64,000 nt of DNA, from the NCBI GenBank assembly GCA_022605425.2, contig JAKIMF020000001.1, positions 1,860,001 to 1,924,000 of the forward strand, given 5' to 3'. Below the pieces are notes generated by a model, which saw only the letters and a list, made by a program, of their open reading frames with translations, ran no database searches and was not told where the DNA came from. The DNA is from Hamiltosporidium tvaerminnensis FI-OER-3-3. Taxonomy: Eukaryota > Fungi > Microsporidia. Of the stretch, positions 9,036 through 48,479 are shown piece after piece. How positions within the stretch are numbered: the stretch's first letter is position 1; each line of letters opens with the position of its first letter. The translations under genes were made by a program, and so were the position numbers.

Positions 9036-9931
9036 ATTGAAAAGCCTTATAATATACCTTGATATAAAAGAGGTATAAAAGAACAAGCGAAAATGTGTAG
9101 TAAATATGCGATATCATTTCGTTGTTATCATATAAAATTACAGGAATAACGAGTTGCTTTTTTTATCTCATAAGTCACAAACAAGTTACCTTCGCAAGAG
9201 ATTTGAAGAACCTCAATCAATTTCTTATGAATATAACATCCAAAAATTCTCTTATATTCTTTCATTATAATTAATTTCCAAACAATAAATTCTAGCGTTG
9301 TCTCGGTGTTTATATTTTTTCTAAGTACTTAAAAATATTCTTAACTTCACGCACTTGATTTTTTTTTAAAAATTTTTTTTGTAGTTTTAGTTGTTTGTAT
9401 TTGTTCTATACAAAAAGTGATTTTTTTTATACAACTAACCTTCTGGATTTATATTTGTTCTCTAAATACCAATAAAAACGTTAAAATATTAAGAGAAATT
9501 AAATCTAATTTTTTATTTGTTAATCATTAATATTTAACACAGGCTTCGCCATTTCGTTTCAAGAAACCAAATATTTATAAATTATGTTTTTACTAAAAAA
9601 AATTAGAAAACGTCTATATAGCATACAATCTCAGATCTTAGTATTTATATTTAAGATTTATATAGGAACCTATGCACCGTATAATCCTAATGCACAAATC
9701 ACATAGATAAACTCAAAAACAATACCCAAATAAAAAGCTCTTATTATCAAAACTTATAAGCGTAAATTTTAAAAGTATTTTAGAAAAAAAATATAAAATA
9801 TAAACGATTCTTTTGAACTTTTTATTTATTCTATGAATTACTCATTAATGAAACAATAATCAACGTGTTTCTTTCATAGAACTTTATTTGCTAACAGGGA
9901 CAGTTTTTACGGGGTTATCCAGCCCCAACAC

Positions 9932-10288
9932 TTATATATTAAGCTCAGATTCTTCATTATGTTCTAAAATAGTTTTATAATAAAGATATTTTTCTGGATA
10001 TTTAAACATTTCAATATATACTTCGATGATTAAAACCCAATATTGCTCAAATGCATTGATTGGTATTTTCTTTGTATCTATAAATAAGTATTGTAATATT
10101 GAAACCAAAGCATTTATAATCAAAAATACTTCTACAATATATAATGTAATATGGAAGGAACTATGGAAGTAATATATCACCTGATTACAAGATGATCTCA
10201 TTGTTATAAAGTGAAGATGTGAGTCATAATATATTTCTAAGATGGCTTGAGCGAGTATGAAGAAGAGGATGACAGATAATGTTTTCAT
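9932..10288 (-). CDS. 118-aa small protein family, copy B2 (left arm of cassette 1)
   Basis: Same length and stop position as the other copies. Confidence 0.45.
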   Translation of the reverse strand: MKTLSVILFFILAQAILEIYYDSHLHFITMRSSCNQVIYYFHSSFHITLYIVEVFLIINALVSILQYLFIDTKKIPINAFEQYWVLIIEVYIEMFKYPEKYLYYKTILEHNEESELNI

Positions 10289-13200
10289 AAACAAACAATG
10301 GAATTCATTCTTTTATAATAAAAATTGTAAACAAGTTTCATGTTTTCTTATCAAATAAACAAATACAAAAATCGGATTTTAGAAAAATTAAACAAAGAAT
10401 ATTTGATTTTTTTAAATAAATAATATCTGAATTGATTATTTAAGAATTTAATATTACTTTTGAGTAATTCTAATTAAAATAATTAATTCAAGAAATGGCT
10501 TTTCTTAACCAATAATTTAATAGCAGAATTATGCTAGCTTATATTTTTAGATAAATATTTTAGTTTGAACAACTAATTTCAGCGCTAAAAATGTTTACTT
10601 TAATGGTAAAAAGCGGAGAGTATAAAAGGCTTGAAATAAAAAAATTTGTGCTGTAAAAAGGGATAATATTTCATTTAATTTTTTGGAATTCGAAGCATAT
10701 TTTATTTTTTTAAGAAATTAAAAAGGACTGATAATCAAATTTTACTAAATGCTTAAGGGAATTCAAAATATACTAAGAAGCCGAATGAAAATGAATTGCT
10801 TTAAGAAATAGAAAATGCGATATATTAAGCTGCTTGAATTATTTGCTTAAAGGATAATTTATCGATTTAATCCTTAATTTATTAGATAAATCATATTAGA
10901 TTAGGAATTAATATTTCCATTGAAATTTAGAACGTTATTTAAAAAAGAATGGATAGTGAATTTTTAAGGCTGTTAGCTTTTTTTGTAAGTGTTTCTTATG
11001 TAGCTCTCGAGGTAAAAACTAGACAGAATATATGAAAATGATATTCCATGCCTATATGAATATCTCATTACAAAGCCTCGCCTTTAATTTGATGAACTTG
11101 AATTCATTTAGAAATAGATTTTCAATAACTGCATATTTAATTATTTTTTTCAAAACGAAAATTTAAATACTAATAAAAAATAATACATTTTGTGTAAAAC
11201 CAATATCTTTTAGAAAATGTATAAATTTAAATATACCCATAAATAATTGACAACGTGTGCCCGATACTAGACTATAGCTTATTGGAAGAAGTTAAAGCGA
11301 AGATTAATTAAAAGTTTAGATATAAAATAAGCGTAAATTAAATGCAAAAAATATTTTAACCTTTTTAGATTATTAAGTTCTTCGATTTATCTATATAATA
11401 AAAGAGAATCATTCAAACTAGTATTTAACTTGGTTTGTTCTGTATCGAAATGAAATATGATACACATTCACCGGAATGGTGGTTTCATCCTTCTGCCTGA
11501 TATGAATTGCAAGAAACTGGCTATGCTGTCTTACAAACGAACATCGCCTTAAAAATTATTAGTATCAGGATCAATAAAAAAATATAAAGCGAATAGGAGG
11601 AATTCGGAATGTAAAATAATCATAATATTTTTTTTTGATAAATGAGAAGCAAATCCAAATACATTTCGGATAAAAACATAAGTTTAAATGAAAAGTTAAA
11701 AATATAAATTACAAAACGTATCTGACGAAATAAAAAAATTATTAATAACAGCCAAGCTCAAAAGATTCAAATTATGAACCTTTTTTTAGTGATTTCTAAT
11801 GATTTAAGAAATGAAATATATGGCCACTCCAACAAACCTTTGTGAATTATATCAAGATATAAAACTATTAGCGATTGATGAAGGAAATTTCAAATTAGCG
11901 AGCTCTAAAATTAGTAGGATTTTAGACTACACGCAAAAAGAACTAAATGATACAATAATATTAGGCTTTACAACGTAGGATTCGATCAACGCCTCTGGTT
12001 TCGCTAAAACAATATATTTTATTCTTTTAAACAAATTAGGAATTTTAAATTTAAATAAAGTGAAAAAACAAGAGTAACACCAGGATTAAAAAATTTCCAA
12101 AAATTAGAACGATAGAGCCGATATATTTATTTCAGATTAGCATGTAAACATGAGAACAATGTCAGCTACAATCAGTTTCAAAGACTTATTTTAAAAGTTT
12201 GAATAGTAAACCTAAGATGCAGCTTTTTAAATCAATTTGGATTATTTATAGGTATGATTTTAGCATAATTAATTGTTTTATAACGTAATACTATGTTGTT
12301 TAAAAATAGCAAAGCTTTATTCTAAATATTTAAGTAATAATATAATCATATATATTTGGTAAGTAAAAGTTGAGAGAAAATAACCACATAAAAAACCATC
12401 TGCCTGGTAATGAGTATGTGAAATAGGTGTGAAGATTATTGTTTGGATTTTGTGGAAATAAAACTACACTACATTTTCGGTTGTTCCATTAGAGTTTGGA
12501 TGAGGAGGGAAAGGTCTACGAAATGGCGAAACTTTTTCTTAAAATTTATTTGCATTTTTTTACTTAACTAAATCCAAGGCTGTGGCTGAACGTGTGGGTA
12601 ATTTCCATGTAAAATCTTGTAAACCTAGCCTTGCTCATTCGGGTTAGAAGAATTTGCGCCTGGAAGATATAAAAACAAAACCCTTTAAAGCCGAAAAAGC
12701 TTAGTTGTCAGTTATACCTGTTGTTATGACATTGCACTACCTAAGTGGACCTCATGCAAATCGGCAAGATATATCTTAGCTAGAAGTCAATTGGATCCGG
12801 GAAATGTACAGTAAATTGGAATGCTGCATGGTCTCAGAGGTGTGAATGGGTTTCGACGTACGATAAAACACCATGCAACGAACATTAAAGAACTTTGGGC
12901 AACAGCCATCTTATTTTTTGGGTTTTACGCACCTTTTAGATTAAATGCTTTGAAATTTAGGTATCTTAGGGGGTACTGATAGATTTATGAGGGATCAGTT
13001 ATATATTTTAAATTTAGAACTGCGTTAATGTCATGAAAACAATATAAATCTTGCCTTCTTTTTTTTTTAAAAGCATGATATTTTTAAAGAAAATTGGTAG
13101 GTTATCTGAAATAAAAAATCAAAATATTTTTAAAAATATTACAATAGAGAGATTTAAAACCAAAATTTGTTATAGGATAGGAAAAAAACATACACCAATT

Positions 13201-14857
13201 CTATGAGAAGAGCCAAGTCCCATGAAGACTATATGTTAAAAGACAGCACGGTAAATAAAACTCGAAATTTAAAGTATGTAATCATGTAAGCATAATTTAA
13301 AGGAAAAATCAAGTTGCAAACATTTTTTTTAAAATATTTTTTTTTTCATTTCGTTTTAATTTAATTAAAGATATTAAAAAATATATTAAAAATGTTTTAA
13401 GGTATAAAATAATTATAGACACCTAAAATTCACCAAATAATCTCTACCAAAGAAAAATTAATTCTGGGTTTCATCATTTGATCTAAAGCCGTGAATATAT
13501 TGCTTTAAGATCGATAAATTTAGGCCTTTACTATTTAATACATATTGAAAAAATTTCTACATATAAATCTAATGTTTTTCATCTACATCTGAATTCTTTT
13601 GAATAATTTGCAAAGAAATTAAACACTAGTTTAATTTTGAACACAATAGCAGGTTGTATAATGCAATCCAACACAGTTCTCATGGCTATTTGCGTTGAGG
13701 AACAGTGATTGGATTGCAAATAATAGTCTTGTATTTCAAATATATTAAAATTAAATTATTTATTTGATTATCGTGGTTTCATTGATTATTATTTTGATAT
13801 TTTATTTAATCATCAAAAATATATTTTAATCGATTAGAATTATAGAAAAAATATAGTCATAAATTATAAATGATAGTTTAGAATAAGTCGTATATTCTTT
13901 TAATTCTGAAATACTCTTCTACATTAATTAATTCACCCTTCTATACTAATATTCGCGTAACATTGTATTTGGTTTTATGTCTTAGATTCAAAACCCAAAG
14001 ATATTGTAGTCTAGGAAATTTTCTATTATATAGAAATGGATTGAATGATTCCTGTTTTATGTATGTATCATTTAGCTTATATCAAGATTCTCCTGGGTCT
14101 TCCCAGGCTAAGGACTTAATTTGTATTTGTTTATATTTTCTATTCTTTTCGTGAATTAAAATAGATTGTTTAAAGGTCTTTTTCATTATTTTCTATTAGT
14201 AAAAGTTTCTTTCTTTACAAATACGTGAATATTTCCAGGGCAAATCTTGAGAGATTTGGTATTCTCTTACTCATTTTTTATAAAAAAAGATCATATGTAA
14301 ACTATATTCTAAACTAAGATTCAACAAGGCGCACAAGTACGCGATTCTTTGGTTTCTGGCTTCTTCTATTTTTTGAAGCGACCCCTGAAATCTTTTTTGG
14401 GGTAAATAAACTATATTGGCTTTCATAAAAAATCAAAATTCCATTATTCTAAATTTAGAACTTTTATAATCATGTAGAATTTTCTCGCTTTCACATACTC
14501 CCTTTGAACAATATTTTTAAATATATGGTTTTAAATTCGTTTTTTCGACTTAAAATCGCATTTTTTATAAAAAAAAATGAATTTATTCTATAATTTATAT
14601 AGTATTTCGAATGTTTTGGTCCCATATATGTGTTTTAATATCGATAACTTAGAATTCTCTTATATTAAACAATTAAAAATGGTCGAAACCTTATAACTGC
14701 TGTTCAAAGTACATTTTGATCTTAAATACAATATAATTTCGCTTTGAAAGTGCCCGATTGTTTCAGATATATATCATTTTGCAGAATAATAACTTTGAAA
14801 GGTTGTTCGCAAGCAAATAATTTTCTATAAAATTACTTGATTAGAATATTAATATAC

Positions 14858-14910
14858 TTCGTCGCTTCCGAATGGCGGGGTTCGATCCCCCCCGGTTGGT
14901 TCACTCTTTA
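14858..14910 (+). other. tRNA T-arm / RNA polymerase III B-box-like GC-rich island (inverted copy ~42212-42273)
   Basis: GGGG-TTCGATC-CCCC hairpin matching GGTTCGANNCC, followed by TTTT. No convincing D-arm or acceptor stem. Confidence 0.35.
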
Positions 14911-16517
14911 CTTTTCGTTCAAAAGTTTGTGGGAGGCTGACAACCCAACCTATCAAAAGAAAAAATTGTCTTTGGCACGCCTATAACATGTTGAATCTAT
15001 GGTTAATTGTTGGATTTTGTTCCATTCGTAGAGAAAAAGCGAGCTATTAAATGAATAAACATACTTCTTCGAGTCATATTTCGTTTCTATTTCATAATTA
15101 ATGTTGAAAAATTTTTTTTTGCGTGCATATCTATTTCGATTTTTATATTCAGGTTTTATAATTGCCGCTTTTTTGAGCAATATTACTTTTTAAAATTTTA
15201 AAATAAATTAAGGCTTAAAATGTATATTTTAACTTATATACTTAATACAGGGCAAGATTTTTTAAAAATTCCGTTCTAGGCATATACACATGCGCTTAAA
15301 ATCCGCACCCAATTTATTTTATTTGTCGACTAAGTCTATATTGAATATCTTCATAAAGATAAAATAACTGATAACCTTCGAATTATACAAAATTTCAAGC
15401 AAAATCAACGTATTTTGATTTATTTTATGAACTAAAGACTGGCGTGAAATTTATGTAAACTTTTCACAATTTTTAATTGAAACCCGCTATTTAATAAAAC
15501 AAATCCAATTTAGATTTTCTTTGGTGGGTTTATATTCTTCAAAATATTTTTTATCGTAACTTTTTCAAACGAAGCATTGTATGTTACAAAAAATATCATT
15601 TGAAGACATATTTCTCTTTTTTACTCTTTACCTTAGTTTAAAAAGAATGATGTTTTCTTTCCGCCACTGTAGCAATCAAATTTATTTTCGTATATTAACG
15701 TCCTAATATCTTGTTTAGCGTGAATCGCATGTTATAGAGTCTATTTAATCAAGAGATATATCTTTGTATATTTAAAATCAGGTTTTCGCCTCATCATGTT
15801 CTTCGACAAAATTCACAAGTGAACTTTAGAAAAAAACCCACTCGAATATTTATCATTTCTTTTTTAAATAGTGTTCTAAATTTCAAGTGAAATATCAATT
15901 CCTAATCTAATATGATTTATCTAATAAATTAAGGATTAAATCGATAAATTATCCTTTAAACAATTAATTCAAGCAACTTAATATATCGCATTTTCTATTT
16001 CTTAAAGCAATTCATTTTCATTCGGCTTCTTACTATATTTTACATACCCTTAAGCATTTAGTAAAATTTGATTATCAGTCTTTTTTAATTTCTTAAAAAA
16101 ATAAAATATGCTTCGAATTCTAAAAAATTAAATGAAATATTATCCCTTTTTACAGCACAAATTTTTTTATTTCAAGCCTTCTATACTCTCCGCTTTTTAC
16201 CATTTAAGTAAACATTGTTAGCGCTGAAATTAGTTGTTCAAACTAAAATATTTATCTAAAAATATAAGCTAGCATAATTCTGCTATTAAATTATTGGTTA
16301 AGAAAAGCCATTTCTTGAATTTTACATTATTATTGGGATTGATGAAAAGTAATATTAAACTCTTAAATAATCAATTCAGATATTATTTATTTAAAAAAAT
16401 CAAATATTCTTTGTTTAATTTTTCTAAAATCTGATTTTTTCATTTGTTTATTTGATAAGGAAATATGAAACTTGTTTACAATTTTTATTATAAAAGAATG
16501 AATTCAATTGTTTGTTT

Positions 16518-16874
16518 ATGAAAACATTATCTGTCATCCTCTTCTTCATACTCGTTCAAGCCATCTTAGAAATATATTATGACTCACATCTTCACTTTAT
16601 AACAATGAGATCATCTTGTAATCAGGTGATATATTACTTCCATAGTTCCTTCCATATTACATTATATATTGTAGAAGTATTTTTGATTATAAATGCTTTG
16701 GTTTCAATATTACAATACTTCTTTATAGATACAAAGAAAATGCCAATGAATGCATTTGAGCAGTATTGGGTTTTAAACATCGATGTATATATTGAAATGT
16801 TTAAATATCCAGAAAAATTTACTTGCTTAAAAATCATATTAGAACATAATGAAGAATTTGAGTTCAATATATAA
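16518..16874 (+). CDS. 118-aa small protein family, copy B3 (right arm of cassette 1)
   Basis: Inverted paralogue of B2. Confidence 0.45.
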   Translation: MKTLSVILFFILVQAILEIYYDSHLHFITMRSSCNQVIYYFHSSFHITLYIVEVFLIINALVSILQYFFIDTKKMPMNAFEQYWVLNIDVYIEMFKYPEKFTCLKIILEHNEEFEFNI

Positions 16875-18767
16875 GTGTTGGGGCTGGACAACCCCGCAAA
16901 AACTGTCCCTGTTAGCAAATTATGTTCTATTAAGAGACGATTGGATTGTTGGATTGATGAGAAATTTATAGAATAAATAAAAAGTTCAAAAGAATCGTAT
17001 ATATTTAATATTTTTTCTTGTTTTCTTTCAAATTTATCTTTTTCATTTGTTAAAACATATAATGCCATATAGTCTCATCTATTCTCAACACCGAGGGGCA
17101 CACTAGACCAGTGTATTTAATAAACTATGATTAAATATTTCAATACAAATATTTTTGTTGATTTATTACGCAAAAATAATTATTATAAATATAGTTATGA
17201 GATTATACAATATAAAATAGTATTTAATAGAGTTTGTATGCATATTTCTTTTATTGACAATAAGATAGAAAAAATATCAATTTCAAATAAAAGAGATGAA
17301 TCATAAAAAAAAACTATAATTAAACATAATTCTAAGAGATATAATATTATTTAATATATTATTTTTACTTTTGCATGTTTTATTTATCTTTCTTTGTTTT
17401 ATCCTGCTATATTTTCCTTTTTTTACTATATTTGAATTAAAACATCAATTTCAATCTTTTAATCTGCGAATATATTATCATTAAAATAATTTTTGGTCTG
17501 CTGTTTTCACATTATTACGATGACTTTCCCTATAATTAAACCACGAGCTGTTTGTTCTGAAGAAATACTCGATTGTATAATAAACAAGTTATTTGTTGCA
17601 TGTGAATTTTTAGTATTTGTGATATTACTGGTTTATACATCTTATGGACTTTATTTCCCTCGATTTCTATAATTGAATCGGTAAAAAGCAGCATGTTATC
17701 ACATCGATACTCAGCAGTCTATAACATTCAAATCCATGATCTTTCAATTCTAAAAAATGTATTTAGTATTTTATTTTCTTGATTAAATGAATAAATAGAA
17801 TTCCATATAAAAGATCGTGATCATCTAAAAAATATGCCAAAATCTCATTCACATTATTTATTTAAAATTACTACTTTATCTTAATCAATACCAATCTCAT
17901 GAATCATAAATTTCTTTATTCCAAAGTATAATTTAAATGCCTTAAATTCTTTTTTTTCGTTTGGATTAATTAATTAATTAGCTTATAAAACCAATACGTC
18001 AGAAAAATCTGTGAATTTAAGAACATCTTTATTGGTTTTAGAAAATGTTGGATTATAAAAATGCAACTTTATAAATTAATATTATAGACATATGCCTTTC
18101 CTATTATTATATTTTGTTTTTTCACAATTATAATTTCTAGGTTATTTTAATATAAGTTATTACAAGTTTTATTTTAAAATATAAAAATATATTCCAAGAT
18201 CTCGAAGAAAGAAACTAAGAGAAACAAATATTATCTAATAATAAATATAAATATACATTCAAATGTATGTTAATTAGCATTTAAACTACAGGGTACATTT
18301 CCAGATCTCACGCTTTAATAAGAACCGATATTTTCTCGGATTAAATATAATATATATTATATTCTTTATAGAGTAAGAACATTGCAAGGTTTGGTTTTCT
18401 ACTGTACAATATATTGTTCTCGTCAACTTATACATAAAAAGCGAATATTTATCTCTTATATACTTAAAAAAATAGGTTCTGCATTTTAATAAAATAGAAT
18501 TTCCATCGTAAGTTATCCAAAAGAGATTCTTAGTTACAGTTTTAACAGAATTCTAAAAAAAATTACTTAATTTATTTAATTATAAAATAGCAAACCGTGA
18601 GAATATATTTTAGGAATAAGTATCGAAAATTATTTAAATAATTTATCTTCATTTTAATTGAAAAGCGTTGAAATATTTTTTTCGAAACATGTTTATCTAT
18701 GATAAAACAGTTGAGAATCGTATGGTTCATACAACCAAATCTTGATTGTCCTTAATTTGGATTTTTC

Positions 18768-21128
18768 ATGAAAAATAGCGTCGGTCTTGAAAAATGTACA
18801 AGAAATCCGAAAAAAATAAATATTTGGTGTTTGTTGTTATATACGTCAATATTATCATATGGTGTCTCAGCAAACAAGTTTGTTTATTTGTTTGAAAAAT
18901 TCGAAACTACCAAAATTAAAATTTACAGTGAATTGCTAAAAGGTATTCCGAGTATAGAAAAAAAAGAAGAATTTGATTTTTTTAATGTTTATTATACCAT
19001 AGATTTAAAGTCATTTGACAGCAAAGATCATGTTTATACATATGAAAATAAGGGTTTTATTGGTTTTGAGGTATTAAATAACTTTCTGAATGCAAACATA
19101 TCAGAATATATAAATGGAAAAATTGAATGCAGTTTTGAGTTGGTGTATTTTTTAAAACTTACCTCTGATATTTCATATTTACTATATAATGTAAACAAAA
19201 ACCAATTTAAATGTCTATTTTTAGGCTTGAAATATCTTAGAGCAATTGATAATAAAAATATTGTTAAACTTCTAGGATGCTTATTTCTAAAAATATGTAT
19301 TAGCCAAAACACCACAGATCTAAAGAAAGAAGAGGTGAAATATGAAGGTTTATTGTCTTTTATTAATTTAACAGAACTTGATTTTTATCTCAGGAAAAAT
19401 CTAATTTCTGGTTTTATAAATATTTTAATGATAAAACATAGTTTTTACGAAGATAATTTGATTTTATTAGGAAATAACAACTTAAATTTTGATGCGATTC
19501 TCTTTAATGAGCATATTCCTTACAAAAATCTATTAATAAATGATTATGAAGTATTTTGTACTCTTGAAAATTTCTTAAGAAATAATTACTATTTGAACAC
19601 ATTCAAATTTTTATTGGTGGAAATAGGTATAAAGTCATTAATAATTAATAATTGTCTAAATTCCGAAACTATATCTAAAAAATTTTACTTTTTCAGTCAG
19701 ATGGCGCATATATTTAAATCAATAATAATTTCAAACTTTCAGGAATCTTCAGAAATTATCATATATGAATTAAGTAAAGGTAATGATATTAATATAGAAT
19801 ATTTTACATTAATAAATTCAATCATAGAAAGTAATTATCTTTTTTCTTTTCTAAAAAAGCAAAGTCTGAAAGGATTAATATTTAATAATGTGATCATGAA
19901 TGTATATCTAAGTTGTTTCGAAAATTATATGAATTCCAATGATACTTTAGAATATATCGATTTTAAAAACATGGAGATGGGTGTTTCTTGGTGGATTAAT
20001 TTTAGTGCAATATCAAATATACTGTGTGTTATACTTGACTTTGATTCCTTTTATTTAGCAAATAATTTTATTAAAGAATGCAGTAATATTGGCTTAAAAC
20101 TTGATCTTTGCTATTTAGAACTATGGTTTGCTGGTTTAAAAATACCACTTGAGTTCTGTGATTTTTTAAGCCAGTGTAAATCTCTGAAAACATTAAAATT
20201 TTTTAATTGTTTTCTTGATAAAAAAATCGAACCTAATTTATACCATGTACTTGAAAGTATGAAAGGATTAGAAACCTTATTCTTGCAAAATATACATTTT
20301 AGCGACAAATTTTATGAGTTTTTGTTTCAAAAGAAAGGAATAAAAATGTTACAGTTAAAAAATTCATGTTTCCCTAGAGAAATCTTGAGATTTGAAATAT
20401 TAAACTTTTATAAATCAATAACCCATTTGATTTTGATAAATATCAAAATTTCTGAACATATATTGATTGAAATATTTAAATTAAAAGACTTGAAAGTTTT
20501 ATCTTTGAAATTCTGTGGAATAATTTCCATCAAGAATTCAATATCAAGGAATTTTATTTCAAAAAATATTCAAAGATTAAATTTATCGGGTTCTGATATA
20601 AATATTTTCGAATCGAATCATATTTTAGCAAAACTCGATAATTTAGAAAGCCTGCATTTATCTTATTTTCAATTTCATTCATGTTGTCTAACAAAATTAA
20701 GCCCCATGTGCAATATGAGATTAAAAACGCTTTCTTATAAAGGTAATAGCTTATATGTAAATGATTTGAACAGAATTAAACATCTTGCGACTATAGAGAA
20801 ATTAAATTTTTATAAATGCAAATTCATCGAAACTAGTTTTTATAAATTGGGTAGTGAATGCAGGTTTTTTAATTCCCTAAAAAAATTGAATCTGGGGTGT
20901 GTAGTTCTAGGTGCAGAAGATTTTCATTATTTAAGAAATTTTAAAAAGCTAAAATATCTTCAAATATCGTTTCATGCCATTCATTTAGTTGAAATGAAAT
21001 TTAACTTAATATCTTTAGCGAAAAGTCGGTTTCCCGCTAAATTATTTTTTAAAGAGATTGATTCTGAAGAGCTATCGGAATATTTTAAGGAAGAGGGTGT
21101 TGAAGAGGTATGCAAATGGTCAATCTAA
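18768..21128 (+). CDS. 786-aa leucine-rich-repeat protein with hydrophobic N-terminal leader
   Basis: Repeated LxxLxL motifs (LKTLKF, LETLFL, LKVLSL, IQRLNL, LESLHL, LKKLNL). Hydrophobic IWCLLLYTSILSYGVSA. Long uninterrupted ORF. Confidence 0.85.
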   Translation: MKNSVGLEKCTRNPKKINIWCLLLYTSILSYGVSANKFVYLFEKFETTKIKIYSELLKGIPSIEKKEEFDFFNVYYTIDLKSFDSKDHVYTYENKGFIGFEVLNNFLNANISEYINGKIECSFELVYFLKLTSDISYLLYNVNKNQFKCLFLGLKYLRAIDNKNIVKLLGCLFLKICISQNTTDLKKEEVKYEGLLSFINLTELDFYLRKNLISGFINILMIKHSFYEDNLILLGNNNLNFDAILFNEHIPYKNLLINDYEVFCTLENFLRNNYYLNTFKFLLVEIGIKSLIINNCLNSETISKKFYFFSQMAHIFKSIIISNFQESSEIIIYELSKGNDINIEYFTLINSIIESNYLFSFLKKQSLKGLIFNNVIMNVYLSCFENYMNSNDTLEYIDFKNMEMGVSWWINFSAISNILCVILDFDSFYLANNFIKECSNIGLKLDLCYLELWFAGLKIPLEFCDFLSQCKSLKTLKFFNCFLDKKIEPNLYHVLESMKGLETLFLQNIHFSDKFYEFLFQKKGIKMLQLKNSCFPREILRFEILNFYKSITHLILINIKISEHILIEIFKLKDLKVLSLKFCGIISIKNSISRNFISKNIQRLNLSGSDINIFESNHILAKLDNLESLHLSYFQFHSCCLTKLSPMCNMRLKTLSYKGNSLYVNDLNRIKHLATIEKLNFYKCKFIETSFYKLGSECRFFNSLKKLNLGCVVLGAEDFHYLRNFKKLKYLQISFHAIHLVEMKFNLISLAKSRFPAKLFFKEIDSEELSEYFKEEGVEEVCKWSI

Positions 21129-26464: not shown

Positions 26465-26467
26465 CCC
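26465..26467 (+). promoter_or_regulatory. Microsporidian CCC motif upstream of the CLASP-like start codon
   Basis: T-rich run then CCC, 5 nt before ATG 26473 (ttttacccataaaATG). Confidence 0.5.
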
Positions 26468-26472
26468 ATAAA

Positions 26473-34996: not shown

Positions 34997-35353
34997 TTAT
35001 ATATTGAACGCAGATTCGTCATTATGTTCTAAAATAATTTTATAATAAGCACATTTTTCTGGATATTTAAACATTTCAATATATACTTCGATGATTAAAA
35101 CCCAATACTGCTCAAATGCATTCATTGGTATTTTCTTTGAATCTATAAAGAAGTATTGTAATATTGAAACCAAAGCATTTATAATCAAAAATACTTCTAC
35201 AATATATAAGGTAATATAGAAGGAACTATGGAAGTAATATATCACCTGATTACAAGATGATCTCATTGTTATAAAGTAAAGATGTGAGTCATAATATATT
35301 TCTAAGATGGCTTGAACGAGTATGAAGAAGAGGATGACAGATAATGTTTTCAT
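34997..35353 (-). CDS. 118-aa small protein family, copy B5
   Basis: Intact paralogue with C-terminal variant CAYYKII...DESAFNI. Confidence 0.45.
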   Translation of the reverse strand: MKTLSVILFFILVQAILEIYYDSHLYFITMRSSCNQVIYYFHSSFYITLYIVEVFLIINALVSILQYFFIDSKKIPMNAFEQYWVLIIEVYIEMFKYPEKCAYYKIILEHNDESAFNI

Positions 35354-37778
35354 AAACAAACAATTGAATTCATTCTTTTATAATAAAAATTGTAAACAAG
35401 TTTCATATTTCCTTATCAAATAAACAAATGAAAAAATCAGATTTTAGAAAAATTAAACTAAGAAAATTTTGATTAGTTATTTGAAATAATATCTGAATTA
35501 ATAGTAAATTAGTGTACAAAAAAAGTAAAAAAATATATTCTGATACGTAGGTTATACACAGAATATTATTTAGAATGGTAAAAATATTAAAAATAAGAAT
35601 TAAAATTTAAATAAAATATGTTTATAAAACAGGTTTGAAAATATTATAAAAATATTTATTTCGTCTTTTGGATTGAAAAATGACTTATATTTTTATTAAG
35701 GATATCTATTCAAAATTAAAACAAGTAGTAAAAAATTCCACTTAATATTTTTTTATTGCATAGAGGTATCTAAAGAAAATTGGTTTAAATTGCAATATTT
35801 TGGCTATATAAATCTTGTTTCATTCTTTCTTTATATATAACTCATTCGGTAAATTCTAATGTCATTGTTTCAATTTCGACAGCTCATTTACAGGTTTAAG
35901 TCTAATGATTTTTGCTTTTAATTTTTTAACCTCTTTTCTTAGAGGTGTGTATGTGCAATTGTATTTGTAAAGAATAATGAACTGGTTTGCTGACCGCTTG
36001 TTTCTGTGATCATATGAGAAGGTATTTTATAATATAATAAAATTACAAAATAAATCAAATTTTTTTAATACTTTTTATTAAATTATTTGGACGCTCTTTT
36101 GGGTAAACACTGTTTTTAGTTATTTCTTCTGGGGTGTATGCAGATAGATCGGAAGATTGACTCACTCTTGAAATGACCTACAAAGTTTTTCATATGCGAA
36201 TTCCGGGTTATATGGATCTATTCTACGCAATTGCAGCGTCTGATATTATTATTTGCTTACTATCATGGTAAGGATGAGTCGCACAGGAGGTTTTAAAAGG
36301 ATTAATTCTAATCACATATATGTTGAAAATGTAAATGCGGCTACTTTACATCTTATCTTTTTATTTCTCATATCATATTGTAACTTTCATGCTATTCTTG
36401 ATAAGTTTTTTTTTTACCGAAAGTCTTGTATCGGTATAAAGAACAGATAAATTAAATTATCGGAGAAGAATGATAGGCGCTTCGCTTTTGTATTGTAAAA
36501 CATGTAAATAATACCCAAAAAATCAGTGAATTAAGAGTTATGTAGAATGTAAACAAAGTCTTCTTTATTTATAATTTTATCGATAAACTTATATGTTGTA
36601 ATTTCGCCTGGTCTTCTAATTTGCATTTTTAAATTTAATTCATTTAAATGTTTGTTGTTAGTGGTTAATATAGCACGTGTACGGATCCACTGATGATTTT
36701 AAACTTTATCGTGATATCTCGAAGAATGTTTTGATTCATTGATCTTGAGTCGATGTCATCTTATAATAGTTTTCTGGAAATGTAATTTATTGTGTAAATC
36801 CGTAAACTTATTACTTCGAATTCTCTATATCTATTATTTTTTTTCCGAAAAGTGCATCGAATGTATCATTTTGTTTTCTAACACGTAAGTTAGTTTTTTT
36901 AATTAATTTCTTTGCATTTCTCTTTAACATGAATGATTTTAGACATGCGTTTGGTGCATTGTTCAGTGTGAAACAAGGAATAACTGATAGAGTTTGACGA
37001 AAGTCACTAGACGGTAAAATTAAAGCTCTTAAGAATGCCTGTTAATTCGCTCTCAAATTTTTTAGTGTACGATAAAGGGCTTCCAGTCCCTTTTTGTGTG
37101 TCTCTATATAGTATTCTACTATTAATTATAGGTTATTGAATTCATAATAAATATAAAATTATATTTTATTAAAACCTCAATGGTGAAAGAAAGGTAAACC
37201 TGAAGTGGAATAATAATTCAAATAAATCTTTTGTTGATCAAAAAAAATCTTTAGTTACACGGGTTAATAAACCCTTTTATTCAAATGATAGAACCTGCCT
37301 CTATCAAAGATACCTTTTATCTGGGTGACTCGAGAGATATTTTGACATCCTCATACATTCGTTTTATTAATCAGTTCGTATTTAGTGACTTTGCCCATTC
37401 CATAATTTTAAGTGATATTATATATTGTTCTCTCATTGGTTTGCAAATACAATGATAACGTTAAAAATGAATGTTTCGGATGATCATTATCTAAAAATGT
37501 TGCCCGATTTTGGAAAAAATTCGAGAAAAAGAGCAAGAATGAATATAAAAAACAAATAGGACACTTTTAACCCTATTATATTTAACAAAACCCATTTAAG
37601 ATATGACACGCTTTACTAGCACGTTTTAGATTACTATACCATCTTTAACTACCTGCTAACCTAAATATTCATTTAATACCATACTTTAACTGTAGTACTC
37701 TCTATAGCAACCCCCGTTAGAATCACCCCTCTATTTTAACATCGTTTAATAAAAATCTCATAATAAAATCTTTAGTTA

Positions 37779-39360
37779 TAGGGTTTTTTGATCAATATAA
37801 TAATCCTTGCAATCCATATAATAATTTTTCGATCAATATCATAATTGTTGAAGTCAATATCATAATCCTTGCAATCAATATAATAATTATTTTTAAAAAA
37901 TAAAAATTTAAAAAATAAAATTATAAATAGTACTTGAGAATTATTATTTAAGAATCACTTGCCCTACTTCAGCCTTTTGCAAATATTCTAAAATTTTGTG
38001 GTAAAAAGAACTACAATGTTCTCCCGTGATCTCATTAAATTTTTAACAAATTAATATTCTCAACTGAGGCCCAGTACGAACGCCACCTCGAATTACTTTA
38101 TTTTTTCAGATCGAGATTAAATTCTCAATTGGATTAAGAAATGGAGAGTAAGGTGGAAGAAATTTTATTCGATCCGCAGCAATTCACTCAATCATCATCC
38201 CATCCACGATAGTGATGAATTCTCGCATTGTCCATTACAAATATAGGAGTCAAAATTCCTTGCTCTTGACAACTTTCATTTATCTCATTAATAGATAATT
38301 TGAAGTCCTCACCATTTACAGCCCTTTCATGAATCTTATGGTATATCATACCATATTTGTTCATTGCTGCGACTCTGAAATATTTTTACTTCAGGCTGCA
38401 GCCACAAAAAAATGTGTAGATTCATCTCTCATATTAGGGTCTCTACTGGGGCGTATTACTACCGCAACCCCAACTTCGTCTAAAAAGACAAAGTTTTTGT
38501 CATCGTTATGAACCTCAAATTCTCGAAAACTAGTTGCGTAATTTGTTCTGAGCTCGTTTTCAATGGTAAATTTCTACGCTCAGACACTAATATTATACGC
38601 TTTAGAGTGTAATGATACTCTCTTGGTGCGCGATCAATATACTAGTTGACACATCAACAATAAAAGTGCATTTGATCTTTTCTGCCAGCTCATACAGGGT
38701 TTCTGTGCACTCCAAGCTAACATAGGTTTGTAAGCTCTCTTTTATTTCCAGAGTTAACTTTGAACGCCTATCACCACCATCTCTTTTCTCGACAAATACC
38801 AGGCCGGTTTTTAAATATCGTTTAACGATACTATTTACCGTCTGTTAATTTATTTGATACATCGAGGCAATTGCAGAAATAGAATGGCCTTCCAATGTCT
38901 TTTAAATTATGCATTCCCGATCATTATTAGAAACTTTTTGTTTCCTCAGAGCTGGAATGGTGGTTGTTAAGGGATTTTCATCATGTGATCTCGATGTTTC
39001 TACAAGACACTTCAAAACATTGTCATTTTCGCACTCTATACATTCCGGTGTTTCACCGACATGAAAATCATATTTGTTCTCGTTGGTATTTTTACATGAA
39101 AAGGAATTTGACATGAGAGTTAATTTTATAATGAATAAATTATTTTTTAAATTTTTATTTTTTAAAAATAATTATTATATGGATTGCAAGGATTATGATA
39201 TTGATTGCAACAATTATGATATTGATCGAGAATTTAATAAATTGATTGCAACAATTATGATATCGATCGAAAATTTATCTTATTGATTGCAAGGATTATG
39301 ATATTGATCGAAAAATTATGATATTGATTGCAGGATTATTATATTCATTGAAAAGCCTTA
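37779..39360 (-). mobile_element. IS630-Tc1-mariner DNA transposon, decayed, copy 2 at the homologous site
   Basis: Same termini and TA duplication (37777-37778 and 39361-39362). Lacks the 10-bp duplication, has fewer subterminal repeats and carries its own stops. Confidence 0.92.
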
Positions 39361-40245
39361 TAATATACCTTGATATAAAAGAGGTATAAAAGAACATGCA
39401 AAAATGTGTAGTAAATAAGCAATATCATTTCGTTATACTGATATAAAATTACAGGAACACCGATTTTTTTTCTCTTATCTGAGTTAGTCACAAACAAGTT
39501 ACCTTCGCAAGAGTTTTGAAGAACCTCAATTAATTTCTTAGGAATATAACATCCAAAAATTCTCTTATATTCTTTCATTATAATTAATTTTCAAACAATA
39601 AATCTAGCGTGGTCTCGGTGCTTATATTTTTGGCTAAATAATTTAAAAATATTCTTAACTTCAGAATTTGATTTTGTTTTATACAATTTCATTTGCTTTT
39701 TCGCTACTTGTATTTGTTTCATACGTAAAGTGATTTTTTTGATACAATTAACTTTCTGGATTTATATTTGTTCTCTAAATACCAATAAAAACGTTAAAAT
39801 ATTTAGAGAAATTAAATCTAATTTTTTATTTGTTAATCATTAATATTTAACACAGGCTTCGCCATTTCGTTTCAAGAAACCAAATATTTATAAATTATGT
39901 TTTTACTAAAAAAAAATTTGAAAACGTCTATATAGCATACAATCTCAGATTTTAGTATTTATATTTAAGATTTATATAGGAACCTATGCACAGTATAATC
40001 CTAATGCACAAATCACATAGATAAACTCAAAAACAATACCCAAATAAAAAGCTCTTATTATCAAAACTTATAAGCGTAAATTTTAAAAGTATTTTAGAAA
40101 AAAAATATAAAATATAAACGATTCTTTTGAACTTTTTATTTATTCTATGAATTACTCATTAATGAAACAATAATCAACGTGTCTCTTTCATAGAACTTTA
40201 TTTGCTAACAGGGACAGTTTTTGCGGGGTTGTCCAGCCCCAACAC

Positions 40246-40602
40246 TTATATATTAAGCTCAGATTCTTCATTATGTTCTATTATGATTTTTAAGCAAGTA
40301 AATTTTTCTGGATATTTAAACATTTCAAGATATACATCGATGTTTAAAACCCAATACTGCTCAAATGCATTCATTGGCATTTTCTTTGTATCTATAAAGA
40401 AGTGTTGTAATATTGAAACCAAAGCATTTATAATAAAAAATACTTCTAAAATATATAAGGTAATATGGAAAGAACTATGGAAGTAATCTATCACCTGATT
40501 ACAAGATGATCTCATTGTTATAAAGTGAAGATGTGAGTCATAATATATTTCTAAGATGGCTTGAACGAGTATGAAGAAGAGGATAACAAATAATGTTTTC
40601 AT
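40246..40602 (-). CDS. 118-aa small protein family, copy B6 (left arm of cassette 2)
   Basis: Intact; B3-like body with B2-like C-terminus and 3' flank. Confidence 0.45.
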   Translation of the reverse strand: MKTLFVILFFILVQAILEIYYDSHLHFITMRSSCNQVIDYFHSSFHITLYILEVFFIINALVSILQHFFIDTKKMPMNAFEQYWVLNIDVYLEMFKYPEKFTCLKIIIEHNEESELNI

Positions 40603-43600
40603 AAACAAACAATGTTATTCATTCTTTTATAATAAAAATTGTAAACAAGTTTCATGTTTTCTTATCAAATAAACAAATAAAAAAATCAGATTTTAGAAAA
40701 ATTAAACAAAGAATATTTTGATTTTTTTAATGAACTAATATCTAAATTGATTATTTAAGAATTTAATATTACTTTTCATCAATCCCAATAAAAATGTAAA
40801 ATTCAAGAAATAGCTTTTCTTAACCAATAATTTAATAGCAGAATCATGCTAGCTTATATTTTTAGATAAATATTTTAGTTTGAACAACTAATTTCAACGC
40901 TAAAAATGTTTACTTAAATGGTAAAAAGCGGGGAGTATAAAAGGCTTGAAATAAAAAATTTTGTGGTGTAAAAAAATATAAATTTTCATTTAATCTTTTT
41001 GAATTCGAAGCATATTTTATTTTTTTAAGAAATTAAAAAAGACTGATAATCAAATTTTACTAAATGCTTAAGGGAATTCAAAATATACTAAGAAGCCGAA
41101 TTAAAATGAATTGCTTTTCGAAATAGAAAATGCGATATATTAAGCTTCTTGAATTAATTGCTTAAAAGATAATTTATCGATTTAATCCTTAATTTATTAG
41201 ATAAATCATATTAGATTAGGAATTGATATTTCAATTGAAATTTAGTACACTATTTAAAAAAAATGGATGAAGGATTCGAGTGGGTTTTTTCGATCGTTCT
41301 TTTGTGAATTTTGTCGATGAACCTGCAGAGGCGAAAACCTGATTTTAAATATAAATAGATGTATCTCTTGATTAAATAGACTCTATAACATGCGATTCAC
41401 GTATAAACAAGATTTTAGGACGTTAATATACGAAAATAAATTTGATTGCTACAGTGGCGGAAAGAAAACATCATTCTTTTAAAACTAAGGTAAAGAGTAA
41501 AAAAGAGAAATATATCCGCAAATGATATTTTTTGTAACATACAATGCTTTGTTTGAAAAAGTTACGATAAAAAATATTTTGAAGAATATAAACCCACCAA
41601 AGAAAATCTAAATTGGATTTTTTGTATTTAATAGCGGGTTTCCATTAAAAATTGTGGAATGTTTACATAAATTTAACGCCAGTGTCTTTAGTTCATAAAA
41701 TAAATCAAAATACTTTGATTATGCTTGAAATTTTGTATAATTCGAAGGTTATCAATTATTTTATCTTTATGAAGATATTCAATATAGACTTAGTCAACAA
41801 ATAAAATAAATTTGGTGCGGATTTAAAGCGCATGTGTATATGCCTAGAACGGAATTTTTCAAAAATCTTGCCCTGTATTAAGTTTATAAGTTAAAATATA
41901 CATTTTAAGCCCTTAATTTATTTTTAAATTTTGAAATGAATATTGCTCAAAAAAGCGGCAATTATAAATCCTAAATATAAAAATCGAAATAGATATGCAC
42001 GCAAAAAATATTTTTCATCACTAATCATGAAATAGAAACGAAATATGACCCGACGAAGTATGTTTATACATTTAATAGCTCGCTTTTTCTCTACGGATGG
42101 AACAAATTCCAACAATTAACCATAGATTCAACAAGTTAAAGGCGTCCCAGAGACAATTTTTTCTTTTGATAGGTTAGGTTGTCAGCCTCCCAAAAACTTT
42201 TGAACGAAAAGTAAAGAGTGTACCAACCGGGGGGGGGGGGGTGGATCGAACCCGGCCATTCGGAAACGACGAGGTATATAAATATTCTAATCAAGTAATT
42301 TTATAGAAAATTATTTGCTTGAGATACAACCTTTCAAAGTTATTATTCTGCAAAATGATATATATCTGAAACAATCGGGCACTTACAAAGCGAAATTATA
42401 TTGTATTTAAAATCATAATGTACTTTGAACAGCAGGTATAAGGTTTCGACCATTTTTAATTGTTTAATATAAGAGAATTCTAAGTTATCGATATTAAAAC
42501 ACATATATGGGACCAAAACATTCGAAATACTATATAAATTATAGAATAAATTCATTTTTTTTTATAAAAAATACGATTTTAAGTCGAAAAAACGAATTCA
42601 AAACCATATATTTCAAAATATTGTTCAAAGGGAGTATGTGAAAGTGAGAAAATTCTACATGATTAAAAAAGTTCTAAATTTAAAATAATGGAATTTTGAT
42701 TTTTTATGAAAGCCAATATAGTTTATTTACCCCAAAAAAGATTTCAGGGGTCGCTTCGAAAAATAGAAGGAGCCAGAAACCAAAGAATCGCGTACTTGTG
42801 TGCCTTTTTGGATCTTATTTTTGAATATAGTTTACATATGATCTTTTTTTATAAAAAATGAGTAAGAGAATACCAAATCTCTCAAGATTTACCCTGGAAA
42901 TATTCACTGATTTGTAAAGAAAGAAACTTTTACTAATAGACAAAAATGAAAAAGACCTTTAAACAATCTATTTTAATTCACGAAAGAATAGAAAATAAAA
43001 ACAAATACAAATTAAGTCATTAGCCTGGGAAGACCCAGGAGAATCTTGATATAAGCTAAATGATACATACATAAAACATGAATCATTCAATCCATTTCTA
43101 TATAATAGAATATTTCCTAGACTACAATATCTTTCTGGTTTTAAATTTAAGACATAAAACCAAATACAATGTTACGCGAACATTAGTATAGAAGGGTGAA
43201 TTAATTAATGTAGAAGAGTATTTCAGAATTAAAAGAATATACGACTTATTCTAAACTATCATTTATAATTTATGACAATATTTTTTCTATAATTCTAATC
43301 GATTAAAATATATTTTTGATGATTAAATAAAATATCAAAATAATAATCAATGAAACCACGGTAATTAAATAAATAGATTAATTTTAATATATTTGAATAC
43401 AAGAATATTATTTGCAATCCAATCACTGTTCCTCAACGCAAATAGCCATGAGAACTGTGTTGGATTGCATTATAAACCTGCTATTGTGTTCAAAATTAAA
43501 CTCGTGTTTAATTTCTTTGCAAATTATTCAAAAGAATTCAGATGTAGATGAAAAACATTAGATTTATATGTAGAAATTTTTTCAATATGTATTAAATAGT

Positions 43601-46600
43601 AAAGGCCTAAATTTATCGATCTTAAAGCAATATATTCACGGCTTTAGATCAAATGATAAAACCCAGAATTAATTTTTCTTTGGTAGAGATTATTTGGTGA
43701 ATTTTGGGTGTCTATAATTATTTTATAACTTAAAACATTTTTAATATATTTTTTAATATCTTCAATTGAATTAAAACGAAATAAAAAAAAATATTTTAAA
43801 AAAAATGTTTGCAGCTTGATTTTTCCTTTAAATTATGCTTACATGATTACATACTTTAAATTTCTAGTTTTATTTACTGTGTTGTCTTTTAACATATAGT
43901 CTTCATGGGACTTGGCTCTTCTCATAGAATTGGTGTATGTTTTTTTTCCTATCCTATAACAAATTTTCGTTTTAAATCTCTCTATTGTTTTATTGAAAAA
44001 AATATTTTGATTTTTTATTTCAGATAACCTACCAAATCTCTATTTAAAAATATCATGCTTTTAAAAAAAACGAAGGCAAGATTTATATTGTTTTCATGAC
44101 ATTAACGCAGTTCTAAGTTTAAAATATATAACTGATCCCTCATAGATCTATCAGTACCTTCTAAGATACGTAAATTTCAAAGCATTTAATCTAAAAGGTG
44201 CGTAGAACCCAAAAAATGAGATGGCTGTTGCCCGAAGTTCTTTAATGTTCGTTGCATGGTGTGTTATCGTACGTCAAAACCCATTCACATCTCTGAGACT
44301 ATGCAGCATTCCAATTTACTGTACATTTCCCGGATCCAATTAACTTCTATCTAAGATATATCTTGCAGATTTGCATAAGGTTCACTTAGGTAGTGCAATG
44401 TCATAGCAACAGGTATAACTGACAATTAAGCTTTTTCGGCTTTAAAGGGTTTTGTTTTTATATCTTCCAGGCGCAAATTCTTCTAACCCGAATGAGCAAG
44501 GCTAGGTTTCCAAGATTTTACATGGTAATCACCCACAAGTTCAGCCACAGCCTTAGATTTAGTTAAGTAAAAAAATGCAAATAAATTTTAAGGAAAAGTT
44601 TCGCCATTTCGTAGACCTCTCCTTCCTCATCCAAACTCTAATGGAACAACCGAAAATGTAGTGTAGTTTTATTTCCAAAAAAATCCAAACAATAATCTTC
44701 ACACCTATTTCACATATTCATTACCGGGCAGATGGTTTTTTATGGGGTTATCTTCTCTCAACTTTTACTTACCAAATATGTATTATTATATTATTACTTA
44801 AATATTTAGAATAAAGCTTTGCTATTTTTAAACAACATAGTATTACGTTATAAAACAATTAATTATGCTAAAATCATACCTATAAATAATCCAAATTGAT
44901 TTAAAAAGCTGCATCTTAGGTTTACTATTCAAACTTTTAAAATAAGTCTTTGAAACTGATTGTAGCTTAAATTGTTCTCATGTTTACATGCTAATCTGAA
45001 ATAAATATATCGGGTCTATCGTTCTAACCTTTGGAAATTTTTTAATCCTGGTGTTACTCTTGTTTTTTCACTTTATTTAAATTTAAAATTCCTAATTTGT
45101 TTAAAAGAATAAAATATATTGTTTTAGCGAAACCAGAGGCGTTGATAGAATCATACGTTGTAAAGCCTAATATTATTGTATCAATGTAGTTCTTTTTGCG
45201 TGTAGTCTAAAATCCTACTAATTTTAGAGCTCGCTAATTTGAAATTTCCTTCATCAATCGCTAATAGATTTATATCTCGATATAATTAACAAAGGTGTTG
45301 GAGTGGCCATATATTTCATTTCTTAAATCATTAGAAATCACTAAAAAAAGGTTCATAATTTGAATCTTTTGAGCTTGGCTGTTATTAATAATTTTTTTAT
45401 TTCGTCAGATACGTTTTGTAATTTATATTTTTAACTTTTCATTTAAACTTATGTTTTTATCCGAAATTTATTTGGATTTGCTTCTCATTTATCAAAAAAA
45501 AATATTATGATTATTTTACATTCCTAATTCCTCTTATTTGCTTTATATTTTTTTATTGATCCTGATACTAATAATTTTTAAGGCGATGTTCGTTTGTAAG
45601 ACAGCATAGCCAGTTTCTTGCAATTCATATCAGCCAGAAGGATGAAACCACCGTTCCGGTGAATATGTATCATATTTCATTTCGATATAAAACAAACCAA
45701 GTTAAATACTAGTTTGAATGATTTTTTTCTATTATATAGATAAATCAAAGAACTTAATATTCTAAAAAGGATAAAATATTTTTTGCATTTAATTTACACT
45801 TATTTTATATCTAAACTTTTAATTAATCTTCGCTTTAACTTCTTACAATAAGTTATAGTCTAATATCGGGCACACGTTGTCAATTATTTATCGGTATTTT
45901 TAATTATATACATTTTCTAGAAGATATTGGTTTTAGACAAAAGTAATATTTGTTATTAGTATTTAAATTTTCATTTTGAAAAAAATCATCAAATATGCAG
46001 TTATTGAAAATCTATTTCTAAATGAATTCAAGTTCATCAAATTAAAGGCGAGGCTTTGTAATGAGATATTCATATAGGCATGGAATATCATTTTCATATA
46101 TTCTGTCTAGTTTTTACCTCGAGAGCTACATAGGGAACACTTACAAAAAAAGCTAACAGCCTTAAAAATTCACTATCCATTCTTTTTTAAATAACGTTCT
46201 AAATTTCAATGGAAATATCAATTCCTAATCTAATATGATTTATCTAATATATTAAGGATTAAATCGATAAATTATCCTTTAAACAATTAATTCAAGCAGC
46301 TTAATATATCGCATTTTCTATTTCTTAAAGCAATTCATTTTCATTCGGCTTCTTAGTACATTTTGAATTCCCTTAAGCATTTAATAAAATTTGATTATCA
46401 GTCTCTTTTAATTTCTTAAAAAAAAATAAATTATGCTTCGAATTCAAAAAGATTAAATGAAAATTTATATTTTTTTACAGCACAAATTTTTTTATTTCAA
46501 GTCTGTTATACTCTAGATTTTTTACCATTTAAGTAAACATTTTTAGCGCTGAAATTAGTTGTTCAAACTAAAATATTTATCGAAAAATATAAGCTACCAT

Positions 46601-46841
46601 AATTCTAGTTTAAACTGTTAGTTAAGAAAAGCTATTTCTTGATTTAATTATTTTAATTAGAATTACTCAAAAGTAATATTAAACTCTTAAATAATCAATT
46701 CAGATATTATTTAAATAAACTAATCAAAATATTCTTTGTTTAATTTTTCTAAAATCTGATTTTTGATTTGTTTATTTGATAAGGAAACATGAAACTTGTT
46801 TACAATTTTTATTATAAAAGAATGAATAACATTGTTTGTTT

Positions 46842-47198
46842 ATGAAAACATTATCTGTCATCTTTTTCTTCATACTCGCTCAAGTCATCTTAGAAATATA
46901 TTATGACTCACATCTTCACTTTATAACAATGAGATCATCTTGTAATCAGGTGATATATTACTTCCATAGTTCCTTCTATCTTACCTTATATATTGTAGAA
47001 GTATTTTTGGTTATAAATGCTTTGGTTTCAACATTACAATACTTCTTTATAGATACAAAGAAAATGCCAATGAATGCATTTGAGCAATATTGGGTTTTAA
47101 TCATCGAAGTATATATTGAAATGTTTAAATATCCAGAAAAATTTACTTGCTTAAAAATCATATTAGAACATAATGAAGAATCTGAGCTTAAAATATAA
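46842..47198 (+). CDS. 118-aa small protein family, copy B7 (right arm of cassette 2)
   Basis: Intact; B2-like LAQ and IIEV with B3-like FTCLKII. Confidence 0.45.
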   Translation: MKTLSVIFFFILAQVILEIYYDSHLHFITMRSSCNQVIYYFHSSFYLTLYIVEVFLVINALVSTLQYFFIDTKKMPMNAFEQYWVLIIEVYIEMFKYPEKFTCLKIILEHNEESELKI

Positions 47199-48479
47199 GT
47201 TTTGGGGCTGGACAACCCCGCAAAAACTGTCCCTGTTAGCAAATTATATTTTATGAAAGAGACGGGTTAATTGTTGAATTTATGAGAAATACATAGAATA
47301 AATAAAAAGTTCAAAAAAATCGTTTATATTTTATATTTTTTTTCTAAAATACTTTACAAATTTACGCCTTTAAGTTTTGATAATAAAAGCTTTTTATTTG
47401 GGTATTGTTTTTGAGTTTTTCTATGTGATTTGTAAAATAGGATTACGATGTGCATATGTTTCTATTTAAAACTTAAATTCAAATAATAAAATCTAGATTG
47501 TATGATATATAAACGTTTTCTAATTTTTTTAGTAAAAACATAATTTATCAATATTTGGTTCCTTGAAACGAAATTACGAAGCCCTTGGTGAAATGACCAT
47601 ATCCAAAGTAAAATTGGATTTAATTTCTCTTAATATTTTAACGATTTTATTGGTATTTAGAGAATGATAAAAATTCGGATAGTTAATTGGATCAAAAAAA
47701 TCACTTTACGTATGAAACAAATACAAGTAGCGAAAAAGCAAATGAAATTGTATAAAACAAAATCAAATTCTGAAGTTAAGAATATTTTTAAATTATTTAG
47801 CCAAAAATATAAGCACCGAGACCACGCTAGAATTTATTGTTTAGAAATTGAAGGATGATCGAAGAATATAAGAGAATTTTTAAATGTTATATTTATAAGA
47901 AATCAATTGAGATTCTTATAATCTCTTGCGAAAATAACTATTTTGTGACTAACTCGGATAAGAGAAAAAAAATCGGTGTTCTTGTAATTTTATATGATAA
48001 CAACGAAATGATATTGCTTATTTACTACATATTTTTGCATGTTCTTTTATACCTCTTTTATATCAAGGTATATTAACTAAAAGATTTTGTTATGAGATTT
48101 TTATTAAACGATGTTAAAATAGAGGGGTGATTCTAACGGGGGTTGCTATAGAGAGTACTACAGTAAAAGTATGGTATTAAATGAATATTTAGGTTAGCAG
48201 GTTGTTAAAGATGGTATAGTAAGTTAAAAATTGTTATTAGAGCGTATCATATCTTAAATGGGTTTTGTTAAATATAATAGGATTAAAGGTGTCCTGTTTG
48301 TTTTTTATATTCATTCTTGCTCTTTTTATCGAATTTTTTATAAAATCGGGCAACATTTTTAGGATGGTCATGCGAAACATTCATTTTTAACGTTATCATT
48401 GTATTTGCAAACCAATGAGAGAACAATATGTAATATCACTAAAAATTATGGAATATGCAAATTTGCCTAAATACGAACT

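Follow-up and report, generated by a model that had tools for sequence, protein, structure and literature searches.

An inverted-repeat gene array of Hamiltosporidium tvaerminnensis probably shaped by gene conversion, ectopic recombination and one long inversion

Why does one and the same 4.9-kb spacer lie in opposite orientations, at two places on one contig, between inverted copies of a gene for a small protein? The question is raised by a 64,000-nt stretch of the genome of Hamiltosporidium tvaerminnensis FI-OER-3-3 (hereafter the window; contig JAKIMF020000001.1, here C12, positions 1,860,001-1,924,000), a parasite of water fleas that forms with Daphnia a well-used host-parasite model. The sequence-only reading of this window had proposed a recurrently inverting cassette that swaps the upstream context of a gene for a 118-aa protein and reshuffles that protein. 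We self-aligned the window, drew a module map over 214 kb of C12 and searched the whole genome (21,638,905 bp in 17 contigs, a single assembly). The results favor, with a probability of about 0.65, a five-unit array that was shaped by passive gene conversion and ectopic recombination and in which one long inversion set the orientations of the spacers. Positions are those of the window unless a contig is named.

Spacer orientations and the array around the window

The spacer at 10960-15845 (+), in cassette 1, recurs inverted at 41276-46169 (-), in cassette 2, with 95% identity, and 118-aa open reading frames (ORFs) point outward from it, as had been read. The coordinates of the sequence-only reading hold, but they cover only two of the five units of an array that extends over 147 kb (C12:1,797,622-1,944,837) on the module map, with the window inside it and more than 700 kb between the array and either contig end. 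The spacers of the five units are oriented -,+,+,-,- and the linkers between the units +,+,+,-; cassettes 1 and 2 are units 3 and 4. Five full copies of the spacer were found genome-wide, all on C12, and a 640-bp module with the gene is present in 18 copies in the array, in both orientations, and in two copies elsewhere on C12. A full arm (~6.4 kb) consists, in this order, of gene, Lflank, Tc1, L2, gene and inner arm. The Lflank-Tc1-L2 section constitutes the F module, of which an arm contains zero, one or two in tandem, as expected from unequal exchange between direct gene copies; in F modules without Tc1, just one TA marks the empty site.

The ~1.15-kb inverted repeats described earlier were recovered for cassette 1 (9786-10955 and 15851-17016, 93.5% identity over 1173 bp), but the arms of cassette 2 are longer, its right arm continuing into an inverted repeat of L2 and Lflank without Tc1 (47337-50227, -). 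When reversed, cassette 2 aligns with 8.0 kb of cassette 1 at 93.6% identity; in forward orientation, the alignment covers 6.5 kb at 92.8%. The left flank said to be common to both cassettes does align (4498-10954 with 34858-41268 forward, 92.8%, including the Tc1), but the match is not especially close: Lflank and L2 on the left side of cassette 2 differ by 7.2 and 8.4%, respectively, from those of cassette 1 and are nearer to the arms of units 2 and 5 (3.6-5.4% difference). As this flank is arm sequence, which side is to be counted as left is ambiguous.

When the outer ends of the array are counted as linker ends, which they resemble, eight of the ten spacer-to-linker junctions obey one rule, the exceptions being the arms on the right of unit 1 and on the left of unit 4. 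A minimum of one inversion, versus three flips of single blocks, leads to a uniform head-to-tail array, and reversal in silico of a 72- or 77-kb block brought all spacers and linkers into one orientation. By parsimony, which is not proof, we infer a single long inversion between the arms of units 1 and 4. It would measure 72-88 kb, with breakpoints possible anywhere in these two arms; the range allowed for the right breakpoint is 31192-41268, and gene module B5 (34858-35502, -; ORF 34997-35353) is one candidate for it. An equivalent inverted duplication may be an alternative to the single inversion. The proposal of a recurrently inverting cassette therefore survives in part: recombination between gene-bearing repeats has left its signs in arm-to-arm homogenization, mosaic ORFs and one reciprocal swap beside the spacer of unit 5, but the orientations of all five spacers can be explained by one long inversion, which makes a dedicated cassette unnecessary. 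Attempts to derive a single inversion from a spacer tree failed, as the spacers are mosaic and form no clean clades, and mapping of the breakpoints by arm type was abandoned, as the arms are too blurred.

The history that we propose begins with an ancestral locus in which a divergent pair of small genes would have stood head-to-head around the 4.9-kb non-coding spacer, with arms of up to 6.4 kb. Together with a linker carrying a leucine-rich repeat (LRR) gene and a CLASP-like gene, this locus may have been amplified into a tandem array of five units, whose 640-bp gene modules, lying in both orientations, would be what ordinary homologous recombination acts on. As the copies themselves show, short tracts of conversion reshuffle variants among the gene copies, and as the varying arms show, unequal exchange between direct copies adds or removes an F module. 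An arm of unit 1 probably crossed over with an inverted arm of unit 4, which turned the 72-88-kb block with units 2 and 3, so that the two spacers of the window would now differ in orientation. Occasional local flips of a spacer are plausible; they would be a now-and-then, unregulated by-product of conversion between the arms of one unit that leaves the promoter-proximal DNA unchanged, and their effect on genes would be small.

Exchange among the gene copies and the rival explanations

In the gene, the minimum number of recombination events (Rm) is 10 in 354 bp, and ~60% of the site pairs at least 30 nt apart fail the four-gamete test. Linkage is broken evenly over the gene module (r2 0.05-0.2), with no crossover hotspot. 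Because exchange is evenly spread and variants are shuffled among all copies, the exchange among all mosaic copies is homologous conversion and not site-specific. Arms of the same unit resemble each other more than random pairs do in Tc1 (difference 0.44 versus 3.4%, p = 0.01) and in the inner arm (p = 0.04), and the similarity within units is not significant for gene, L2 and Lflank. In 13 of the 35 doubleton columns, the variant is common to copies of the same unit, versus 11% expected, and 10 of these 13 are in unit 5. No recombinase had been seen in the window, and genome-wide, too, the tyrosine (PF00589) and serine (PF00239) recombinase families gave no match where the controls matched, although a divergent enzyme could escape such a search.

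This exchange bears on what had been claimed for the individual copies. An inner-arm marker was said to stay with its spacer end; its alleles at 10462/16330 and 40777/46650 are as described, but the tracking fails across the array, where the marker follows the spacer end only in units 3 and 4, and units 1, 2 and 5 have one allele in both arms. The copies flanking cassette 1 are B2 (9793-10436, -; 118-aa ORF 9932-10288), next to the inner arm of unit 3 on the spacer-start side (10437-10955, +), and B3, which together with its inner arm occupies 15851-17009 (+; ORF 16518-16874) in an arm without an F module and whose 3' half is identical to that of B8, the outer copy of unit 5 (63296-63936, -; ORF 63431-63787). 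Those flanking cassette 2 are B6 on the spacer-end side (40107-41268 with its inner arm, -; ORF 40246-40602) and B7 on the spacer-start side (46174-47334 with its inner arm, +; ORF 46842-47198). B6 is indeed a chimera, with a B3-like 3' half of the ORF, a B2-like 3' untranslated region (UTR) and a switch near the stop codon; two other copies, however, have the very same 3' UTR. B7, read as B2-like in part, differs from B2 at 22 nt, from B3 at 16 nt and from the unit-1 copies at 13-14 nt, and since it is nearer to B3 and the unit-1 copies than to B2, B6 and B7 are not reciprocal chimeras. Nor would upstream context be swapped: since the ORFs face away from the spacer, a crossover within an ORF or farther out would not separate the 5' end of that ORF from the 520-bp inner arm upstream of it and the spacer end. 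In 8 of the 18 gene copies, the upstream DNA common to the rest is just ~150 bp.

Several points weigh against a single inversion. Its breakpoints cannot be pinned because conversion has blurred the arms; the arms cluster only weakly according to their spacer end (best p = 0.057); and frequent arm conversion weakens the argument from parsimony, which falls short of proof. In unit 5, bases specific for one spacer end, which lie 25-26 nt away from the spacer, have changed places between the arms; this reciprocal swap suggests two crossovers close to the spacer and also fits two opposite conversions. A paralogous array on contig C3 holds spacers in both orientations as well, and the evidence on orientation comes from one assembly. 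Part of this would be accounted for by passive local flips that recur between each spacer's own arms often enough for isolates to differ, as they do in the FF region of Saccharomyces discussed below. We consider such flips unlikely as the source of the present orientations. They would agree with the arm-to-arm homogenization, with a marker common to both arms in three of the five units, with the within-unit excess of doubletons, with the unit-5 swap and with the mixed orientations on C3. However, they require three events rather than one; the flip of a cassette like unit 3 would put R1a, and not L2 and Lflank, to the right of cassette 2; and B6 and B7 are not reciprocal. Unit 5, which lies outside the window (C12:1,933,500 and 1,938,420), combines the reciprocal swap with 10 variants private to both of its arms and gives the clearest hint of genuine flips at a single unit.

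The difference in orientation, and with it the long inversion, could also be an artefact of assembly, i.e., a haplotype switch or mis-join among units that are 93-98% identical in a diploid. Units of 25-30 kb are near the N50 of the Oxford Nanopore reads (32.7 kb), and the authors of the assembly report difficulty with tandem multicopy repeats (PMC10542269); the C3 array moreover contains a near-100% identical 35.4-kb duplicate. The array copies on C12, however, differ by 1.5-8% and have private insertions with target-site duplications. In three short-read runs from two studies, one of which was possibly the source of the assembly, spacer contigs that do not span the arms have ~4x the depth of apparent single-locus contigs, a depth that is not a copy number in itself and that fits, roughly, four or more spacer copies and not doubled haplotypes. 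Of the 25 differences listed for these contigs, 24 match other assembled copies. Depth and matching variants argue for a real multicopy array and are silent on its order or on live flipping, and we regard an artefact as improbable.

Least probable of all appears programmed or selected variation, in which inversion or conversion would switch or diversify a host-facing protein. The family has 39 copies, is restricted to one lineage and forms two inverted arrays; its ORFs are intact in 17 of the 18 array copies, with amino-acid variation in blocks clustered at residues 101-107 and 114-117; and the protein has a hydrophobic N-terminus and its gene an invariant post-stop motif. Set against this are the lack of a match to either recombinase family tested and of a crossover hotspot, the absence of a distinct expression site and of a gene in the spacer, and a pN/pS of 0.76, which is not above 1. 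A bolder scheme, in which the C12 and C3 arrays together make up a microsporidian diversification system that combines a host-facing family, conversion with within-clone flips and pseudoknot-controlled expression or translation, is a long shot. If flips within clones or mosaics selected by Daphnia were true, this would be, to our knowledge, the first such variation system in a microsporidian.

The gene family and known systems of inverted repeats

The 118-aa gene is under coding constraint: its ORFs are intact in all but one of the array copies, indels are few (one within the 357 bp of the ORF, whereas the 289 bp of flank have 10), stops are absent from the ~60 variable columns (P about 0.02) and second codon positions are the most conserved in comparison with the C3 paralogs, which have ~30% identity with the same frame and length. 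Relatives were found only in Hamiltosporidium. Single-sequence and profile protein searches, with targets of 0.55-1.75x the query length, returned only two hypothetical proteins of H. magnivora, and neither Pfam nor Atlas gave a match. AlphaFold gave no confident structure (pLDDT 61, pTM 0.34). The N-terminus is hydrophobic, another such segment lies at ~46-69, and the protein may be either secreted or membrane-bound.

Five nucleotides past the stop codon, all intact copies examined of both subfamilies (~30% protein identity) have a 16-nt motif that may form an H-type pseudoknot with a downstream 7-mer (e.g., 16880-16910, +). The motif has 39 matches in the genome, every one at a family gene, including sites on C3 and at C9:562849 and C16:596278, versus none for the control; it is absent in the metagenome contigs. 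All nine of its base pairs are kept, with one change from C-G to U-G, and this invariance provides no support by covariation. A role as a 3'-end or translation signal is a guess. We rejected a role of this 16-nt motif as a loxP-like crossover site, as linkage is no lower there and its arms are only 4 bp, and read-through of the stop, as the extension is not conserved between the subfamilies.

The sister array on C3 (C3:796,188-867,353) was examined as sequence over 30 kb and by coordinates over the remainder. It contains 17 paralogs on strictly alternating strands, with head-to-head spacers oriented +,-,+,- and tail-to-tail spacers +,+,-,+. Its 35.4-kb duplicate, near 100% identical in one spacer, is either very recent or a duplication in the assembly. 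On C12, a dispersed copy at 1,595 kb has flanks 70% like the array and a gene module 91% like it, with a 3' UTR that matches a copy of H. magnivora, which is a matter of conversion or selection acting over 200 kb.

Bacterial invertons and shufflons invert DNA at short specific sites by a tyrosine or serine recombinase. Alternating inverted repeats in coding sequence could yield chimeric ORFs here as in shufflons, but exchange extends over 640 bp, crossovers are not limited to a short site and no such enzyme was found. The analogy with mating-type flip/flop switching fails as well: the region between inverted repeats is shared with FF1/FF2 of Ogataea polymorpha and Komagataella phaffii, in which inversion brings MATa or MATalpha, both within the inverting region, to a site of expression or of repression (PMC6692504), but here the spacer has no ORF longer than 75 aa and the same gene, rather than different genes, lies at its two ends. 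Such switches also invert inducibly in a clone and have a silencing centromere or telomere beside one end. The closest known system is the flip/flop (FF) region of Saccharomyces chromosome XIV, with its inverted repeats of Centroid genes, where ~4% of the conversions end in a crossover that inverts the interval (PMC9731477), a rate from which rare local flips would be expected here. Both loci have inverted repeats of a lineage-restricted family of paralogous genes, homogenization by conversion (significant here in Tc1 and the inner arm only), inversion of the intervening DNA by crossover and no recombinase. Unlike the one near-identical repeat pair of Saccharomyces, five tandem units with 18 copies of ~94% identity are found here, the spacer is non-coding and the array is known from one assembly. 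The gene-bearing arms around a spacer and the arm-to-arm conversion also resemble primate X/Y ampliconic palindromes, but the arms here are 1-6 kb and 92-99% alike. Long segmental duplications were previously reported in Hamiltosporidium (PMC6944219). Most likely, the array clearly exemplifies how ectopic recombination reshapes an array of genes in an asexual, low-recombination microsporidian, and the uncharacterized 39-copy family restricted to Hamiltosporidium and its conserved, RNA-like 3' element are the parts worth following.

Other features of the window

The spacer of unit 3 contains a decayed 730-bp dispersed repeat (~12340-13130). A role of the spacer as carrier of a tRNA or other non-coding RNA was rejected, as ARAGORN and Rfam gave no match; a GC-rich stretch resembling a tRNA T-arm lies at 14860-14950, where both programs were blank. 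An inverted-repeat type of centromere is not favored, as the five copies stand in tandem on a single contig and no complete one lies outside it; microsporidian centromeres are not known (PMC12449221).

The outer gene copy of the left arm of unit 3 is B1 (4498-5139, -; ORF 4634-4990). It is followed by an F module (5211-9790, +), an arm part and not a unique flank, which comprises Lflank (5211-7417), Tc1 (7418-9049, with a TA target duplication and a DDE_3 remnant) and L2 (9050-9790). The left arm of unit 4 contains gene module B4 (31192-31834, -), the sole broken copy of the 18, with a frameshift within the first six codons; an F module without Tc1 (31906-34855, +), which has its empty TA site near 34113 and is the sister of the Tc1-less module to the right of cassette 2; and, beyond B5, an F module with Tc1 (35574-40104, +; Tc1 37779-39366) that is closest to the arms of units 2 and 5.

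Between cassettes 1 and 2 lies the inter-unit linker K (17020-31191, +), with the LRR gene (18768-21128), an old long interspersed nuclear element (LINE; 22556-25946) and the CLASP-like gene (26510-29968). An inverted, truncated copy of the linker (54347-63285, -) retains the old LINE and the LRR gene and is missing the CLASP-like gene. At the deletion junction between this copy and the arm lies a high-copy retrotransposon of the type without long terminal repeats (RVT_1; 50228-53900, -; 5' limit approximate). This LINE (50228-54030) links the arm to a truncated linker, in which one gene module is missing besides the CLASP-like gene; recombination between two LINE insertions would account for such a junction. 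One LINE family has inserted independently, ~35 bp apart, in the Tc1 of two paralogous arms (C12:1,802,020 and C12:1,927,585), each time with its own target-site duplication, and a third time just upstream of a CLASP-like copy (C12:1,855,950). Three copies of the CLASP-like gene keep frames of 1152-1164 aa, and one of the four copies of the LRR gene has the full 786-aa frame.

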